From Mytilus edulis (taxonomy: Eukaryota), in assembly GCF_963676685.1 (NCBI RefSeq), contig NC_092356.1, positions 64,666,001-64,730,000 of the forward strand: 64,000 nt of DNA, in the 5' to 3' direction. Positions 1,993 to 58,290 of this stretch are shown one piece after another; position 1 is the first letter of the stretch, and the number at the start of each line of letters is the position of its first letter. Position numbers and translations under genes: made by a program. Under the pieces are notes generated by a model. It was not told the origin of the DNA. It saw only the letters and a list, made by a program, of their open reading frames with translations, and made no database searches.

Positions 1993-3718
1993 TTATATGA
2001 GTATATTAAATAAACATGTATATACCAAGCTAAGTCAGTTTATATCTTGTTTTTCGTCTGAATATACAAAAGGCGAGGAGAGCTACTTTGATAGATCAGG
2101 TTGACTGATAAGCTGTCTATATAAAGTAATGGGACAATGCATGGCATGAAGACATCACCAAATCACCGTATGCAATACTCAAAAAGACATCCAGAGCTTA
2201 CCATATAGTCATCAACTACCCACCAACAGGCCGTGAGTTTTGGTTGGCTCTTAACTCAAATCCAAGAGCACAGCAAAATGTCAAAATATTCTATTCAAAC
2301 TAGGTGACCTGGGAGAAAAACATTGAAATTTCCAAAGAAACACACACACCCTCAACTTTTAATAAGGAGATTTGGTATTAATGCAAATGAGTCAACTATC
2401 CATCAAAGTTCAAATGTAGTGGATGTAAGCAATTATATATAGGCAACCATATAACCTTCAACAATGAGAAAATGAAAACATACGGTATTGTCGGCTACAA
2501 TAGTCCATGAATTGAAAAATATGAAACAGTTCAATTGAGAAAAATAACAGCCTATTTTAAAACAACATGAATTACGAAAAACACATATAAAAGACATCAA
2601 CAAACGAAAACCGTTGAACTAAATGCTCCCGAGTTGGAGCAGGCACATGCAATATATTGTGGCGTTTAACATGCTTGTAAACAGCCGGGACAGTTTTGTT
2701 ACAGCACAGCATAAGAACAAACTATACAAATCAGTGGAAAAGGGCTTAACGTATGAGATAAATACAAAACAGAAGGAAAAAAAGGTCTAACAAAGACAAA
2801 TACCGAATGTGGCAGGGTATTTTTACCTCATTTTCAAACAACCAAAGTACTGAAGTACTGAACATCGAATGACTGCAAGTTCTTTTGGATTGTCACAAGC
2901 ACTTGTCTCAGAAAAAAAATCACATCTCTATTCTTGAAAGTGAAGTTAATGTACAGATATATTTTTTTGAAACTCAGTACACATATACTATATCATATGA
3001 TCTTTTTAATTTCAATGCCAAATATAGAGTTCTGACCCTCAATTCCACGGTCCACTAGACATGGAAAATGATAGTGCGAGTGGGGCATTTATGTGGTATG
3101 GACACATTCTTATTCAAATCCTTTATTAAAGAAGTCAGTAAATTTACTACAGATAACACTACATTTGTAAATTAGACGCACTAATCTAATTAAAAGGTAT
3201 ATCTCTGATTTCGTAATACTTATGTGTATGAGAAAATTAATATATATATTAATTTTGATAAGATTGTTGAACGAACGCGTTAAATCTTAGGATTTTATTC
3301 TTGTCAATTTTTCCGACCGAGCAGAGCGAGTCGAAAACAATTAAATAGACGTCTTTCAAGCCAAAGTTAATATGTTTGCTATACACACATATGATTTTAT
3401 TAAACTTGGTTATCAATTATTAATAAAAAATACAGTCCTAGATAATAAAAAATCATGAAATATTTGGTCTAGTTATAAAAAAAATCACACAAAAAAACAG
3501 TAGTTGTCGTTTGTTGATGTCGTTCTTGCTTCTCGTTTTTTAGCTCACCTGGCCCGAAGTGTCAAGTGTGCTTTTCTCATATCTTGGCGTCCGTCGTCCG
3601 TCGCCGTAACTTTTACAAAAATCTTCTCCACTGAAACTACTGAGCCAAATTCAACCAAACTTAGCCACCATCATCATTGGGGTATCTAGTATAACAAATC
3701 TGTCCGGAAGAGCATTGA

Positions 3719-51470: not shown

Positions 51471-51570
51471 AAATGTATAAATTCGCATTCATGTCTGATC
51501 GTAATGTGAGGAAATTAACGTTTAAATATAGATTAAAAAAAAGGAATGGCATAAATTCCTGGATAAAATT
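51471..51570 (+). repeat. 100-bp target-site duplication, left copy
   Basis: Identical to 58191-58290. Single copy at the paralogous empty site, about 20600-20700. Confidence 0.95.
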
Positions 51571-51616
51571 TTTCAATAAATCGTTGTCAAAGCCTATCCC
51601 AGCACCCCAACTCCAT

Positions 51617-51769
51617 AGATCATAAGGTGTTTCGAACATCTATTTAGACCAATTAGAATTAACTAATTGATCATGGCCATGTCCATCGTCAGGAGCCCAA
51701 GCCATTGCATAGTGACACTTATTATAAAAATACTGTACCTTTTATTAGGGGCTCGACACCTCATGATCT
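51617..51769 (-). ncRNA. Type III hammerhead ribozyme (copy in left arm)
   Basis: Reverse complement of the same fold as 54507-54659. GUC cleavage predicted between 51755 and 51754. Confidence 0.88.
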
Positions 51770-51865
51770 GTCTGACTTATATTTTTCTATACTCTTTATC
51801 TACTTAACCTTGTTTATCAATTTAATGAACAAAGTATAGAATCTATTTTCATAGTCTGCAACATA

Positions 51866-53824
51866 TTAATTATTCAGAGTTGCTGATGTTACTATGTCTT
51901 TCAAGTTTTTATGCCTACGGAAAGCAAACAGAGGTCTTTTATCAAATAACAGTTTTGCCTCTTCGTCATCCTTTAATTTATCCCAGTGTTTTAAGATATT
52001 GTTCTTTATGTATGATTTCTGTCTTGAAAACACTGTGGAGAATACCAAGGGAGGCGACTGTAATACAGATTTGGGCTTTACCATTAATGTGTCTATTCTT
52101 TGTTTTGCAGTCACTTCCTGCATAACAGTTTTAATTTCATTTTTTGGATATCCCCTTTTAATGAGGCGCTCAGAAAATAACGCATATTGTGTTTGCAAAT
52201 CTACTGGATCGTTCGTACATCTCTTAAAGCGAAGCATTTCTCCTTTAATTATGCCTCTGAAAGTAGAGGATGGGTGGCATGAGGATCTCTCTAAATACTG
52301 ATAATTTTCAGTCTTTTTTCGGAATGTCGTGAGGTCTAAGATTCCTGTTTCTCTAAATCTTAGACCTTTGAATACCAGCACATCTAAAAACTGCATTTTA
52401 GTTTGTGATTTCTCGTGTGTAAACTTTAGAAGTGCATGTTGTCTATTAGCATGTTCAAAGAATTGTGATATTTCATCATCTGTACCTTCATTGTAAATAA
52501 AAAAGCCATCGTCCCTAAACCTGTAGAGACTTGATATTTTTTGTTTATGTTGAAAAGTCCTTAAAATACTATTTAAGACTTCATAAACTCTCAGATCCGT
52601 AATTTCTGGTGATAAACTATTTCCCATTGGAACTCCAGTTGAAGTTTTATAAAATTTACCATTGAACATAAATTCATTATTTTCAAGAACTATCTTCAGA
52701 AGTTCCACTATATATCGCAACGGAGGCAAAAGTATCGTATGTTTACATTTAATTATCGTAGGCCAAGCATGCTTGACTGCGTCAATCATTTCTACATGGG
52801 ACATATTGTTGTACATTTCTTTTATGTCAAAACTGACTAAGTAGGCGTCAGGTTTTACCTGCAATTTCTCAATAATATTTATAAATTCTAATGAGTCCCT
52901 TAAATGTGTTTCTTGTTTTAATACTGCTGGAAGCATGAATTTATCCAAATACTGCCCTATTCTCTCTAAAACAGTACCCGATAATGAAACAATAGGCCTT
53001 CCTTGAATTCTGACATTTTTATAAAGCGTAGGATTCTGTTGAACGCTTTCTATTAGTTCAGGATCAAGTTTGTGCAATTTAGGCAGAAGATACAACCTTC
53101 CTGGTTTGAGATCTCTCTTAGCAGAAAGATATTTAAAGGAGATTTCATCCATGACCCCTTTTCTATGCATTTCAAAGATAATAGTATTGATTTTTTGGTT
53201 AGTCTCTATTATGTTTAATTTTGCAATTTCCATGAAGTGAGTAGCACTACTTAATTGCCTCAGACCTTCATTTATATATTCTGTTTTATCCCAGATCACT
53301 GTGGTGTTATTTTTATCTGCTTTTCGAATAACTATTTTTTCGTTTCGTTTGAGGGAAGAAATTGCCTTTCTTTCCAGCGTAGTGAGATTATCGTGTGCTT
53401 TATTAATTGTTATATTATCTATCTCAACCTTAGTTTTGAATATATATGTCTCAATGGCATTATTTGCAAGTTCCGGTTTATATCCGGATTTTGTTAAAAA
53501 GGGATGACGTTTGAAAATATCACCCTTGTCAAAATGATATTTACATCTTAGTTTTCTTGCAAATTCATTGAAATCTGATGCAATACTAGATTTTGCAAAT
53601 TTCGTCGAGGGAGACGGTATATATTTTAATCCTTTACTGAGTAACAAAATCTCATCCTCTTTTATTTTTTCAGTGGTGAATATTTTAACATATTCACGTG
53701 CTTTTTCAATTGATTTTTTCCTCTTGAGAGAGCGAATCTTGATCTTTCTATTTTTCTGATAGAAGGCCTTTTTCATGATAGCCTTTTTTGTTTTTTTCGC
53801 TCTCTTAAAGTGTCTGTTAGCCAT
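51866..53824 (-). CDS. Penelope-like (Neptune-type) reverse transcriptase, no GIY-YIG; 652 aa from AGCATGG (open frame extends to 53917)
   Basis: Motifs LLSKGLKYIP, IRKADKN, LYLLPKLHK, GRPIVS, LVSFDIKEMY, GVPMG, YRFRDDGF, FLDV, SCHP, RGYP and AFRRHKNLKD followed by a stop. Confidence 0.92.
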   Translation of the reverse strand: MANRHFKRAKKTKKAIMKKAFYQKNRKIKIRSLKRKKSIEKAREYVKIFTTEKIKEDEILLLSKGLKYIPSPSTKFAKSSIASDFNEFARKLRCKYHFDKGDIFKRHPFLTKSGYKPELANNAIETYIFKTKVEIDNITINKAHDNLTTLERKAISSLKRNEKIVIRKADKNNTTVIWDKTEYINEGLRQLSSATHFMEIAKLNIIETNQKINTIIFEMHRKGVMDEISFKYLSAKRDLKPGRLYLLPKLHKLDPELIESVQQNPTLYKNVRIQGRPIVSLSGTVLERIGQYLDKFMLPAVLKQETHLRDSLEFINIIEKLQVKPDAYLVSFDIKEMYNNMSHVEMIDAVKHAWPTIIKCKHTILLPPLRYIVELLKIVLENNEFMFNGKFYKTSTGVPMGNSLSPEITDLRVYEVLNSILRTFQHKQKISSLYRFRDDGFFIYNEGTDDEISQFFEHANRQHALLKFTHEKSQTKMQFLDVLVFKGLRFRETGILDLTTFRKKTENYQYLERSSCHPSSTFRGIIKGEMLRFKRCTNDPVDLQTQYALFSERLIKRGYPKNEIKTVMQEVTAKQRIDTLMVKPKSVLQSPPLVFSTVFSRQKSYIKNNILKHWDKLKDDEEAKLLFDKRPLFAFRRHKNLKDIVTSATLNN

Positions 53825-54274
53825 GCTTACAGATCGGAGGAATTCGCCAGAAGGCAGTGTGCAATTCATTTCTTGATGTAATATTGATTCTTTATCAAGC
53901 CTGTATGAACTCACCAACCAATCAGATATCAGTTACTCATTAGGAAACTAAATAAGGGGAAGAGGAGAACATCCCTCTAGACATTGCAACCAATCACCAT
54001 TCATTGCTCTATAAACTGACACGTATACTAGATGTATTTTGACAATTTGACTTTTTAATTTATCAGACACTCAAAAACCATGCATTTTTGTTTTGCAAAT
54101 CTCAGCACTTTATTATCAACTTATTCCACTCACTAAACTCTGACGTATTGGTTTTTACATTTACTTTCCCTGTATTATATAGGTATTATAACTTTAATAT
54201 TTCAATAAATAATAAATCAACCTTTTTAGCTTTCGGTAAAGATATTTTTCACATTTAATATCTATTTTGACAGA

Positions 54275-54705
54275 AATATCTTAAATCAATGGGATACATT
54301 GAAGGATGACGAAGAGGCAAACATTTTATTTTATTTGATAAAAGACCTCTGTTTGCTTTCCGTATGCATAAAAACTTGAAAGACACAGTAACATCAGCAA
54401 CTCTGGGTAATTGATATGTTGCAGATTATGAAAATAGTTTCTAAACTTTGTTCGTTAAATTGATAAACAAAGTTAAGTAGATAAAGAGGATAGAAAAATA
54501 TAAAACAGATCATGAGGTGTCGAGCCCCTAATAAAAATTACAGTATTTTTATAATAAGTGTCACTATGCAATGGCTTGGGCTCCTGACGATGGACATGGC
54601 CATGGTCAATTAGTTAATTCTGATTGGTCTAAATAGATGTTCGAAACACCTTATGATCTATGGAGTTGGGGTGCTGGGATAGGCTTTGACAACGATTTAT
54701 TGAAA
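54275..54705 (+). repeat. 5-prime pseudo-LTR: diverged direct copy of the element 3-prime end (57760-58189)
   Basis: Contains a decayed RT C-terminus (DDEEA...FDKRPLFAF), the 3-prime UTR and the hammerhead. Confidence 0.92.
54507..54659 (+). ncRNA. Type III hammerhead ribozyme (5-prime pLTR copy)
   Basis: Stem III AGAUCAUGAGGUGU/ACACCUUAUGAUCU (14 bp), C17 at 54521, stem I GAGCCC/GGGCUC, core CUGACGA, extra U, stem II GGACAU/AUGUUC, then GAAA. Confidence 0.9.
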
Positions 54706-55015
54706 GAAATCCTTGCTTGAGGAGACAGAGCGAATGATAGGTCGTGGAAGTGCAGAAGAAGGCGCTTGTCTAAAAAGGTTGACATTCCTAGTAAAAGAAA
54801 AGAAAGAGATATGGAACGAACGATATCTGAGGGCTATTCGAAACATGTCGACATCTAGTACCGAGAAACCGGAAACTGAAGCAAATACTATATCTAAACT
54901 CCAGGATGAGTTACGAGAGCTGAGAGGCTTCCTTGAACCATCCCATCGAGGACGAGGCGGACGTCGATTTAATCGTGGAAGGGGGAGGGGAGGAAGAAGA
55001 TTTCCCTCCGTTTAA
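54637..55015 (+). CDS. ORF1: small helical protein with C-terminal RGG/RG tail; probably 124 aa from ATG 54637, frameshifted here by GAAAGAAA at 54702-54709
   Basis: GC-richer, open 100-codon frame 54713-55015 (ISKLQDELRELRGFL...RGRGGRRFNRGRGRGGRRF). The upstream frame MFETPYDLWSWGAGIGFDNDLLK joins it if one GAAA is removed. Confidence 0.6.
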
Positions 55016-55762
55016 GAATTAAACAGTATCGAACAATATTGAAATGACTTTGTACATAACTCATAACTTTTACTTTTATCGGAAAATAAATGATTTAACT
55101 TAACTGTGTAACTTCAGACAAGTCGTTGGAAGATGATAAAACATTTAACGCGTGCCTATACACTTAGTTAGTGATGTTTTTTGACAAACAGCTGTAAAGT
55201 GTGTGAATAAAAGTGTAATATCTTATCAGTTCTTGAGTTACGCTTAATTTATAGATAATTGATATAGCAGAACACAGGAGGTTAGTTTATCAATGAACCC
55301 AATGCAATTATGATAATAAACAAATGTTTACAAATATATCTTTATTTAAAGTTGAGAAATAAAGCTATCAAAGATAATTTTTGGTAATTCGTTCACGTTA
55401 AGTGGTCAGAATTAATACATTATAATTAAATGCAACGGTTATAATCGGCTAAAGCAATAGTTCATTGCCAATATGTTTCTTATTTCTGTCAAAATAGATA
55501 TTAAATGTGAAAAATATCTTTACCGAAAGCTAAAAAGGTTGATTTATTATTTATTGAAATATTAAAGTTATAATACCTATAGAATACAGGGAAAGTAAAT
55601 GTAAAAACCAATACGTCAGAGTTTAGTGAGTGGAATAAGTTGATAATAAAGTGCTGAGATTTGCAAAACAAAAATGCATGGTTTTTGAGTGTCTGATAAA
55701 TTAAAAAGTCAAATTGTCAAAATACATCTGGTATACGTGTCAGTTTATAGAGCAATGAATGG

Positions 55763-55844
55763 TGATTGGTTGCAATGTCTAGAGGGATGTTCTCCTCTTC
55801 CCCTTATTTAGTTTCCTAATGAGTAACTGATATCTGATTGGTTG
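55763..55844 (+). promoter_or_regulatory. Candidate internal promoter for RT: two TGATTGGTTG (inverted CCAAT) boxes 72 bp apart
   Basis: The 10-mer occurs at 55763 and 55835, 90-170 bp upstream of ATG 55935, and is mirrored in the left arm. Confidence 0.35.
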
Positions 55845-55983
55845 GTGAGTTCATACAGGCTTGATAAAGAATCAATATTACATCAAGAAATGAATTGCAC
55901 ACTGCCTTCTGGCGAATTCCTCCGATCTGTAAGCATGGCTAACAGACACTTTAAGAGAGCGAAAAAAACAAAAAAAGGCTATC

Positions 55984-57894
55984 ATGAAAAAGGCCTTCTA
56001 TCAGAAAAATAGAAAGATAAAGATTCGCTCTCTCAAGAGGAAAAAATCAATTGAAAAAGCACGTGAATATGTTAAAATATTCACCACTGAAAAAATAAAA
56101 GAGGATGAGATTTTGTTACTCAGTAAAGGATTAAAATATATACCGTCTCCCTCGACGAAATTTGCAAAATCTAGTATTGCATCAGATTTCAATGAATTTG
56201 CAAGAAAACTAAGATGTAAATATCATTTTGACAAGGGTGATATTTTCAAACGTCATCCCTTTTTAACAAAATCCGGATATAAACCGGAACTTGCAAATAA
56301 TGCCATTGAGACATATATATTCAAAACTAAGGTTGAGATAGATAATATAACAATTAATAAAGCACACGATAATCTCACTACGCTGGAAAGAAAGGCAATT
56401 TCTTCCCTCAAACGAAACGAAAAAATAGTTATTCGAAAAGCAGATAAAAATAACACCACAGTGATCTGGGATAAAACAGAATATATAAATGAAGGTCTGA
56501 GGCAATTAAGTAGTGCTACTCACTTCATGGAAATTGCAAATTTAAACATAATAGAGACTAACCAAAAAATCAATACTATTATCTTTGAAATGCATAGAAA
56601 AGGGGTCATGGATGAAATCACCTTTAAATATCTTTCTGCTAAGAGAGATCTCAAACCAGGAAGGTTGTATCTTCTGCCTAAATTGCACAAACTTGATCCT
56701 GAACTAATAGAAAGCGTTCAACAGAATCCTACGCTTTATAAAAATGTCAGAATTCAAGGAAGGCCTATTGTTTCATTATCGGGTACTGTTTTAGAGAGAA
56801 TAGGGCAGTATTTGGATAAATTCATGCTTCCAGCAGTATTAAAACAAGAAACACATTTAAGGGACTCATTAGAATTTATGAATATTATTGAGAAATTGCA
56901 GGTAAAACCTGACGCCTACTTAGTCAGTTTTGACATAAAAGAAATGTACAACAATATGTCCCATGTAGAAATGATTGACGCAGTCAAGCATGCTTGGCCT
57001 ACGATAATTAAATGTAAACATACGATACTTTTGCCTCCGTTGCGATATATATTGGAACTTCTGAAGATAGTTCTTGAAAATAATGAATTTATGTTCAATG
57101 GTAAATTTTATAAAACTTCAACTGGAGTTCCAATGGGAAATAGTTTATCACCTGAAATTACGGATCTGAGAGTTTATGAAGTCTTAAATAGTATTTTAAG
57201 GACTTTTCAACATAAACAAAAAATATCAAGTCTCTACAGGTTTAGGGACGATGGCTTTTTTATTTACAATGAAGGTACAGATGTTGAAATATCACAATTC
57301 TTTGAACATGCTAATAGACAACATGCACTTCTAAAATTTACACACGAGAAATCACAAACTAAAATGCAGTTTTTAGATGTGCTGGTATTCAAAGTTCTAA
57401 GATTTAGAGAAACAGGAATCTTAGACCTCACGACATTCCGAAAAAAGACTGAAAATTATCAGTATTTAGAGAGATCCTCATGCCACCCATCCTCTACTTT
57501 CAGAGGCATAATTAAAGGAGAAATGCTTCGCTTTAAGAGATGTACGAACGATCCAGTAGATTTGCAAACACAATATGCGTTATTTTCTGAGCGCCTCATT
57601 AAAAGGGGATATCCAAAAAATGAAATTAAAACTGTTATGCAGGAAGTGACTGCAAAACAAAGAATAGACACATTAATGGTAAAGCCCAAATCTGTATTAC
57701 AGTCGCCTCCCTTGGTATTCTCCACAGTGTTTTCAAGACAGAAATCACACATAAAGAACAATATCTTAAAACACTGGGATAAACTAAAGGATGATGAAGA
57801 GGCAAAACTGTTATTTGATAAAAGACCTCTGTTTGCTTTCCGTAGGCATAAAAACTTGAAAGACATAGTAACATCAGCAACTCTGAATAATTAA
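55984..57894 (+). CDS. Penelope-like reverse transcriptase, second copy (636 aa); an extra A at 55970-55976 disconnects the upstream ATG at 55935
   Basis: Same motifs, 7 amino-acid differences from the minus copy. A7 here vs A6 in the other arm (could be a homopolymer error). Confidence 0.9.
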   Translation: MKKAFYQKNRKIKIRSLKRKKSIEKAREYVKIFTTEKIKEDEILLLSKGLKYIPSPSTKFAKSSIASDFNEFARKLRCKYHFDKGDIFKRHPFLTKSGYKPELANNAIETYIFKTKVEIDNITINKAHDNLTTLERKAISSLKRNEKIVIRKADKNNTTVIWDKTEYINEGLRQLSSATHFMEIANLNIIETNQKINTIIFEMHRKGVMDEITFKYLSAKRDLKPGRLYLLPKLHKLDPELIESVQQNPTLYKNVRIQGRPIVSLSGTVLERIGQYLDKFMLPAVLKQETHLRDSLEFMNIIEKLQVKPDAYLVSFDIKEMYNNMSHVEMIDAVKHAWPTIIKCKHTILLPPLRYILELLKIVLENNEFMFNGKFYKTSTGVPMGNSLSPEITDLRVYEVLNSILRTFQHKQKISSLYRFRDDGFFIYNEGTDVEISQFFEHANRQHALLKFTHEKSQTKMQFLDVLVFKVLRFRETGILDLTTFRKKTENYQYLERSSCHPSSTFRGIIKGEMLRFKRCTNDPVDLQTQYALFSERLIKRGYPKNEIKTVMQEVTAKQRIDTLMVKPKSVLQSPPLVFSTVFSRQKSHIKNNILKHWDKLKDDEEAKLLFDKRPLFAFRRHKNLKDIVTSATLNN

Positions 57895-57990
57895 TATTTT
57901 GCAGACTATGAAAATAGATTCTATACTTTGTTCATTAAATTGATAAACAAGGTTAAGTAGATAAAGAGTATAGAAAAATATAAGTCAGAC

Positions 57991-58143
57991 AGATCATGAG
58001 GTGTCGAGCCCCTAATAAAAAGTACAGTATTTTTATAATAAGTGTCACTATGCAATGGCTTAGGCTCCTGACGATGGACATGGCCGTGATCAATTAGTTA
58101 ATTCTAATTGGTCTAAATAGATGTTCGAAACACCTTATGATCT
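57991..58143 (+). ncRNA. Type III hammerhead ribozyme (3-prime pLTR copy)
   Basis: GUC 58003-58005, CUGACGA 58068-58074, GAAA 58127-58130. Stem I is 5 bp in this copy. Confidence 0.9.
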
Positions 58144-58190
58144 ATGGAGTTGGGGTGCTGGGATAGGCTTTGACAACGATTTATTGAAAT

Positions 58191-58290
58191 AAATGTATAA
58201 ATTCGCATTCATGTCTGATCGTAATGTGAGGAAATTAACGTTTAAATATAGATTAAAAAAAAGGAATGGCATAAATTCCTGGATAAAATT
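58191..58290 (+). repeat. 100-bp target-site duplication, right copy
   Basis: AAATGTATAAATTCGC...GGATAAAATT is identical to 51471-51570. Confidence 0.95.

Follow-up and report, generated by a model that had tools for sequence, protein, structure and literature searches.

The locus described here raises the question of whether a long sequence in the terminal repeat of a retroelement, at 54507-54659 (+ strand) of the 64,000-nt stretch of Mytilus edulis DNA under analysis (the window), gives rise to an RNA that cuts itself, and what such a cut would contribute to the propagation of the element. The preliminary description of this DNA had read the sequence as a large type III hammerhead ribozyme, present in three copies, with an additional nucleotide in its core and a pseudoknot between loop I and the stem II region. 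Our analysis leads us to propose that it is likely to be a monomeric type III hammerhead, active and part of a Penelope-like element (PLE) of M. edulis that lacks an endonuclease, the activity being predicted from sequence.

The host is a unit of 3484 nt with 380-nt pseudo-LTRs, as delineated by repeat analysis, which is the classical PLE layout. The upstream pseudo-LTR occupies 54331-54710 and the downstream one 57811 to approximately 58190-58194 (both on the + strand), with the element 3' end at approximately 58190. The last 189 nt of the upstream repeat (54522-54710) extend from the predicted cut site to the element 3' end, and this same segment recurs elsewhere in the genome as free-standing tandem units. 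A PLE reverse transcriptase (RT) of 636 aa is encoded at 55984-57894 (+); it is 99% identical to M. edulis proteins, matches only RVT_1 in Pfam, lacks a GIY-YIG domain and terminates immediately past the conserved ...RRHKNLKDIVTSA motif. In 54600-56100 there was no sign of a GIY-YIG-like ORF, the nearest RT relatives (from Mytilus, Saccostrea and Pinctada) are all approximately 640 aa long and without PF01541, and the EN+ PLE proteins that do carry PF01541 are only approximately 28% identical to this RT. The C- or N-terminal GIY-YIG endonuclease that defines a canonical EN+ PLE is accordingly missing from the element, while the position of the hammerhead motif, within a pseudo-LTR of an element that codes for a PLE-type RT, is the one by which PLE hammerheads are recognized. 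Upstream of the RT, a small ORF (54713-55015) encodes 100 aa from a UUG start with an Arg/Gly-rich C-terminus (RGRGGRRFNRGRGRGGRRF); it has no Pfam match and is possibly a nucleic-acid-binding ORF1.

The element in the window is part of a composite insertion. An inverted, 5'-truncated element copy (51571-54278, - strand), 99-100% identical to 55481-58189 and containing its own RT ORF (51866-53917, -), adjoins the partial tandem, such that element 3' ends face outward on both sides, and the whole is flanked by a perfect 100-bp direct target duplication (left 51471-51570, right 58191-58290, +). The duplication suggests two priming events at a widely staggered break, a reading that is of interest for an element with no endonuclease of its own. 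As a separate observation, the downstream flank GAGCUAUUAUCACGYUGUCAGCYUGAGAAUUG... is common to at least seven insertions of the family to which this element belongs, family A (L002, L004, L009, L010, L032, L033 and L096), and could be a preferred target repeat, co-mobilized 3' sequence or a segmental duplication.

Within the window, a pattern search for the hammerhead core plus its flanks returned exactly three matches, at 54584 (+), 58068 (+) and 51675 (-). The middle copy (54507-54659, +) lies in the upstream pseudo-LTR, with ORF1 and the RT ORF following it, and would be cut between C54521 and G54522, the right copy (57991-58143, +) lies in the downstream pseudo-LTR 97 nt past the RT stop with its predicted cut at C58005/G58006, and the left copy (51617-51769, -) is inside the inverted, truncated element. 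The order of elements is stem III 5' strand, GUC, stem I hairpin, core, stem II hairpin, GAAA and stem III 3' strand. With loops on stems I and II, an open stem III and a cut site near the 5' end of the motif, the topology is type III. Inspection of the downstream sequence in family A revealed no type I alternative. In the middle copy, with all features on the + strand, stem III pairs 54507-54520 with 54646-54659 (14 bp, one of which is G-U), followed by the GUC site with C17 at 54521 and a 6-bp stem I, GAGCCC/GGGCUC (54522-54527 with 54578-54583), closed by a 50-nt loop I (54528-54577). The core sequence CUGACGA (C3-A9, 54584-54590) is succeeded by an unpaired extra U at 54591 before G10.1, then by the 6-bp stem II, GGACAU/AUGUUC (54592-54597 with 54637-54642), and GAA (54643-54645). 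Of the two putative pseudoknot strands, AUGGCU (54571-54576) is at the 3' end of loop I, one nucleotide before the stem I 3' strand, and GGCCAU (54598-54603) is immediately 3' of the stem II 5' strand. Stem II is extended by a 10-bp hairpin (54604-54629), and a conserved unpaired UAAAUAG (54630-54636) forms the 3' side of the stem II internal loop. The conserved core is complete: C3 U4 G5 A6 N7 G8 A9, G12 A13 A14, the A15.1-U16.1 pair (A54646-U54520) and an H17 that is not G (C54521).

Pattern search and alignment confirmed that all three copies carry the features first attributed to them, and the alignment also bore out the differences listed between copies. In the right copy, a G-to-A change at 58062 abolishes the top stem I pair and weakens this stem (RNA reads carry G at this position), and GGCCGU replaces GGCCAU; in the middle copy, the hairpin has two A-to-G changes that retain wobble pairs. 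The extra core nucleotide, which was said to be tolerated in natural hammerheads, proves to be a published hallmark of PLE hammerheads (PMC4209133).

That the motif is a chance likeness to a hammerhead, or a decayed and inactive relic, is in our view hardly credible. A type III descriptor scan gave three hits in the window vs 0.03-0.07 expected by chance per dinucleotide shuffle of it, and when a stem III of at least 8 bp was required none of 60 shuffles gave a hit; conservation with covariation across families and the cut-site footprints, both discussed below, likewise favor a working ribozyme. The argument for chance or decay is the silence of Rfam. The hammerhead models (RF00008, RF00163 and RF02275-7) have no match in the whole window at the gathering score, none at E up to 10 on 12 kb or on the 191 nt around the motif, and none at the sister-family loci. 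We attribute this to a limit of the models, and not to an absent defining feature, because of the 50-nt and 44-nt insertions and the extra U. Large hammerheads of this kind escape both standard Rfam models and short-loop descriptors, and type III motifs may outnumber reports of them in animal genomes. Folding gives a z-score of -5.0 for the + strand and of -2.7 for the - strand. Stems III and I are retained in the nested minimum-energy structure (-48.9 kcal/mol), in which the stem II region pairs otherwise, and the hammerhead-constrained fold (-44.5 kcal/mol) lies 4.4 kcal/mol higher before the pseudoknot duplex, worth approximately -6.9 kcal/mol, is counted.

The comparative evidence comes from paralogous families of one genome (M. 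edulis, 1.37 Gb), where further families were found by a diverged-RT search and the DNA 3' of each RT stop was inspected. Family A numbers at least 59 near-identical copies, plus older decayed ones, and the RTs of the sister families are 40-51% identical to P0027, a family B protein. Families A, F, F2 and G have type III hammerheads; in families B, C1, C2 and D/E the hammerheads are of type I, begin within approximately 20-50 nt of the RT stop and possess a stable 5-8-bp stem III hairpin, unlike the minimal or dimeric published form. The full conserved core is present in all eight families, and so is a common plan: a pseudoknot strand is separated by 1-2 nt from a stem I strand, next come CUGAYGA (replaced by CUGAAGA in G) and, in most cases, one unpaired U, and a stem II of 4-6 bp is set off by 0-2 nt from the second, complementary pseudoknot strand. 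The extra U occurs in A (U54591), B, C, D/E and G and is absent from F and F2. The sequences of stems I, II and III differ between A, F, F2, G, B, C1, C2 and D/E, and complementarity is kept. The original type III reading thus finds its support in the complete core and in the same architecture recurring in seven diverged families. Pairing holds in 93.7% of cells across the family A superfamily, where one pair of stem III occurs as U-A (n=20) and C-G (n=8), though such within-family covariation is weak evidence because dead, decayed copies drift neutrally.

The two topologies separate along the RT phylogeny. In a quick FastTree reconstruction of 15 rows, the type III families form one subclade (support 90), the type I families together with oyster proteins form the other (96), and both nest in a 100%-supported endonuclease-less clade. 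As far as these sequences indicate, the split is consistent with a single permutation event. An assignment of family E to type III, with a 3-bp stem III, was considered and rejected; it is type I, with the substrate strand downstream. Several further features of these loci are recorded here for their own sake. Type I motifs with the extra U and a 5'-tail pseudoknot occur at L035 (reverse, 0-based 3441-3640), L047-L054, L068 and L069, and stem II of family B encloses an insert of approximately 120 nt. The family G hammerhead (L055:3840-3953:+) is a compact type III of approximately 100 nt with CUGAAGA and an A17 cut site; it has a U-U mismatch at the base of stem II and its activity is uncertain. 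At the same locus, on the strand opposite the RT (reverse, 0-based 774-835), is a 61-nt canonical-looking type III hammerhead of sequence unrelated to the large ones and below the Rfam gathering score.

The complementarity of AUGGCU and GGCCAU proposed at the outset is real, comprising five Watson-Crick pairs and one G-U pair, and comparison between families supports the pseudoknot that was predicted from it. A pseudoknot helix of 4-7 bp can be drawn at the same architectural position in all eight families with four unrelated sequence solutions. Among the type III families the pairs are AUGGCU/GGCCAU in A, CAAGGCU/GGCCUUG in F, AGGCU/GGCCU in F2 and ACGUGG/CCACGU in G, and among the type I families UGACAG/CUGUCA in B and AUAUAGG/CCUAUAU in C1 and D/E; GGCU/GGCC is therefore one solution beside ACGUGG/CCACGU, AUAUAGG/CCUAUAU and UGACAG/CUGUCA. 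Between families A and F one pair is swapped from U-A to A-U, and the RNAalifold consensus of the 3' domain is the pseudoknot helix. Against composition-matched shuffles, the P value per family ranges from 0.0004 to 0.29 (0.0004 in D/E, 0.016 in F). The family A pseudoknot taken alone is not significant (P approximately 0.10), and the case for it therefore rests on the between-family comparison. This lack of significance is one reason to consider that the hammerhead is active while the pseudoknot does not form, with other loop contacts or an element protein joining stems I and II instead; GGCC is also palindromic, such that CAUGGCCAUG can self-pair, and the Anolis PLE hammerhead has been reported to require its protein (PMC11167929). 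We regard this as unlikely in view of the four unrelated complementary pairs at one position in eight families, the low P values for D/E and F and the U-A to A-U swap, and such pseudoknots are experimentally required in other hammerheads (PMC3088659). A pseudoknot that covaries in four ways alongside a natural permutation would make these families a compact system for studying how peripheral structure follows the rewiring of a ribozyme. As a side observation, the unpaired segment at the position of 54630-54636 is near-invariant in A, F and F2 (UAAAUAG/UAAAUGA/UUAAUAG) despite changed helices, and this side of the stem II loop may be engaged in a tertiary contact to the pseudoknot or in protein binding.

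Shortened copies of these elements carry what appears to be the record of cleavage. Genome-search matches were found to start at query base 23, one base past the predicted cut, and in family A the 189-nt tandem units run from G1.1 to the element 3' end; at the junctions between them, '...UUGAAAUAUU' is followed by a single variable base (U, G or A) and then by GAGCCCC. Among the 59 exact copies of the sequence just past the cut, 52 are preceded by the normal GUGUC, two by point variants of it and all remaining five by such a junction; a sixth junction of this form (L034) is on a copy with one base change. Other 5' truncations are scattered. In L096, an inverted 189-nt unit terminates exactly opposite G1.1 and continues into GGGCUC CUGACG, as would be expected if a cDNA that had run off the cleaved end snapped back on itself. 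The remaining families add boundaries of their own: '...UUAAUAAA|GUGCCC' at least five times in family F (L056, L094), a solo copy beginning at C1.1 in family F2 (L058), 82-nt units beginning at GGGUCC in family B (L037) and a unit boundary within 2 nt of the cut in family E (L053). Units at the predicted cut, tandem or inverted, are therefore found in five families, one of which (E) places the boundary within 2 nt. Junctions within one tandem array are non-independent events, and the GAGCCCC junction of family A could involve up to 3 nt of microhomology because ...AUAUUUGAG precedes unrelated flanks at some of the 3' ends in this family, an ambiguity that is absent in F, F2 and B. Element tails have also given rise to short tandem arrays, with units of approximately 340 nt in family E (L053) and of 451 nt and 258 nt in family F (L094), which resemble non-autonomous retrozyme-like repeats born from a 3' cleavage product.

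The position of these boundaries relative to the ribozyme is instructive. They lie 5' of the ribozyme body in the type III families and 3' of it in the type I families, and therefore track the scissile bond and not the structure. Read in this manner, copies that begin at the predicted cut indicate that the ribozyme cuts in living cells, and the DNA junctions argue that RNA ending at N1.1 has been used as a template for reverse transcription: the DNA 5' boundary is the first base after the cut, and it is therefore the downstream product (189 nt in family A) that would serve the RT as template. DNA boundaries alone cannot tell how an RNA end arose, and the fold could be real while the G1.1 boundary marks a transcription start or an RT stop site with no RNA cleavage involved. 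We consider this improbable. The boundary follows the predicted cut in five families of different sequence and changes sides with topology; for a transcription start to fall on H17/N1.1 in both topologies would be a coincidence, and an RT that has reached G1.1 has already copied the stem III 3' strand, which therefore leaves no helix at that point to stall it.

Four raw-read RNA runs were mapped on 54711-58290 with 59 reads in the best run, and at this very low depth no piles of read starts or ends are reported at the cut site. In one run, depth increases stepwise on passing the cut site (1.8, 5 and 15.3), for which solo units inside host transcripts are another explanation; library strand is ambiguous, and many reads continue into foreign flanks and may thus come from such solo units. 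Reads of two studies contain an inverted joint that links 58007 to 58170 over a 4-nt microhomology and is absent from the assembly. Its position at 58007 is suggestive of a cDNA that ended at the cleaved 5' end, though it could be a polymorphic genomic junction. A local peak at 55671-55790 (depth 9 in run X20) has fixed differences at 55733 (A>T) and 55759 (A>C), and its reads are probably those of a related transcript or a further copy rather than of full-length element RNA.

Taken together, we propose a mechanism in which the transcribed pseudo-LTR would fold into the 14-bp stem III, 6-bp stem I and 6-bp stem II around a standard core, and a pseudoknot of 5-7 bp, in which the 3' end of loop I pairs with the strand immediately past stem II, would hold stems I and II side by side. 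The RNA would then cut itself between C17 and G1.1 (54521/54522 and 58005/58006), and the element RT would copy the downstream cleavage product, run off the cleaved end and either jump templates or snap back. The role that we infer for the ribozyme is to give defined ends to the transcripts of tandem and partial-tandem copies by trimming those that are read-through or multimeric. A cut in the upstream pseudo-LTR would yield a coding RNA that is terminally redundant over 189 nt, and cuts in both pseudo-LTRs would release an RNA of unit length that bears 5'-OH and 2',3'-cyclic phosphate termini and could be circularized; either route could feed template jumping and help to build tandem arrays and pseudo-LTRs. 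Whole-unit tandem arrays do exist in the genome, with a 4262-nt period repeated at least seven times on C7, a 4349-nt period on C9 and a 2566-nt period in family B. These arrays fit a role in which the double-cut 3.5-kb RNA is circularized as in retrozymes and rolling-circle reverse transcription builds the arrays, in place of linear end trimming. Hammerhead products bear ends that are joined by tRNA ligase, and mussels accumulate hammerhead circRNAs of another family (PMC7229834), both of which speak for a circular intermediate. We hold this to be possible while placing it below an even chance; a circle junction would be identical to genomic tandem sequence and hence uninformative, whereas the short units point to linear cleaved RNA as the template. 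For the clade as a whole, we offer more tentatively, at slightly short of even confidence, that endonuclease-less PLEs of bivalves share one pseudoknotted monomeric hammerhead, circularly permuted once (from type I to type III or the reverse), whose products in vivo template short repeats as well as inverted arms and possibly also the pseudo-LTRs. The cut site would in that case behave like the boundary of a retroviral R region, and the junctions would be the first direct genomic evidence for a hammerhead role in PLEs.

Much of the groundwork for this proposal is already published, namely hammerheads in PLEs, hammerhead pseudoknots and the extra core nucleotide. PLE hammerheads (min-HHR and variants) were published in 2014 by Cervera and de la Pena and are all described as type I, those of metazoans being minimal, having hardly any helix III and low activity in vitro, and presumed to work as dimers (PMC4209133). 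The family A hammerhead is like them in its location in a PLE pseudo-LTR, its long stem II and the proposed processing of tandem transcripts. It departs from them in its monomeric type III form with a helix III of 14 bp, in a loop I of 50 nt, in the 44 nt by which stem II is extended and in its pseudoknot, and it belongs to an element without endonuclease. Neither for PLEs nor for bivalves did our literature searches yield a type III hammerhead, and the hammerheads of animal genomes are reported to be mostly of type I (PMC7229834); the families described here add a natural permutation between type I and type III inside one retroelement lineage. A 2024 study of the Anolis PLE did not find RNA ends or reads at the cut site (PMC11167929), while in M. 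edulis the genome appears to record the cut in five families.

The pseudoknot has precedent in the work of Perreault et al. (2011), who predicted a Watson-Crick helix of 4-7 bp between the stem I loop and stem II in approximately 40% of hammerheads and found it to be needed for fast cleavage at low Mg2+ (PMC3088659). As in those ribozymes, a helix from the stem I loop to sequence adjacent to stem II replaces the classical loop-loop contacts. Here, however, the second strand is in the internal loop of a long interrupted stem II and not in a terminal loop or tail, and the plan is kept through a type I/type III permutation within one retroelement clade. Among animal type III hammerheads, the discontinuous one in the 3' UTRs of mammalian Clec2 (Martick et al. 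2008, cited in PMC6155905) is similar in topology, in the very large insertion that closes stem I and in its 3' UTR location, but it is an element of a host gene with a 150-1500-nt insert, and neither a retroelement nor a pseudoknot is described for it. An extra core nucleotide is known from a viroid (cited in PMC6155905).

The type III hammerheads of plant retrozymes and viroid-like RNAs resemble the present one in topology, in monomeric action, in their location in retroelement terminal repeats and in the possibility of unit-length or circular RNA products. Plant retrozymes are, however, LTR elements that are non-autonomous and whose compact hammerheads have the classical loop contacts, whereas the host here is an autonomous animal PLE. 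HDV-like ribozymes are found at the 5' ends of R2 and other non-LTR retrotransposons, and the parallel with family A is that a self-cleaving RNA sets the 5' end of a retroelement RNA within a longer transcript. The ribozyme class and the retroelement class are both different.
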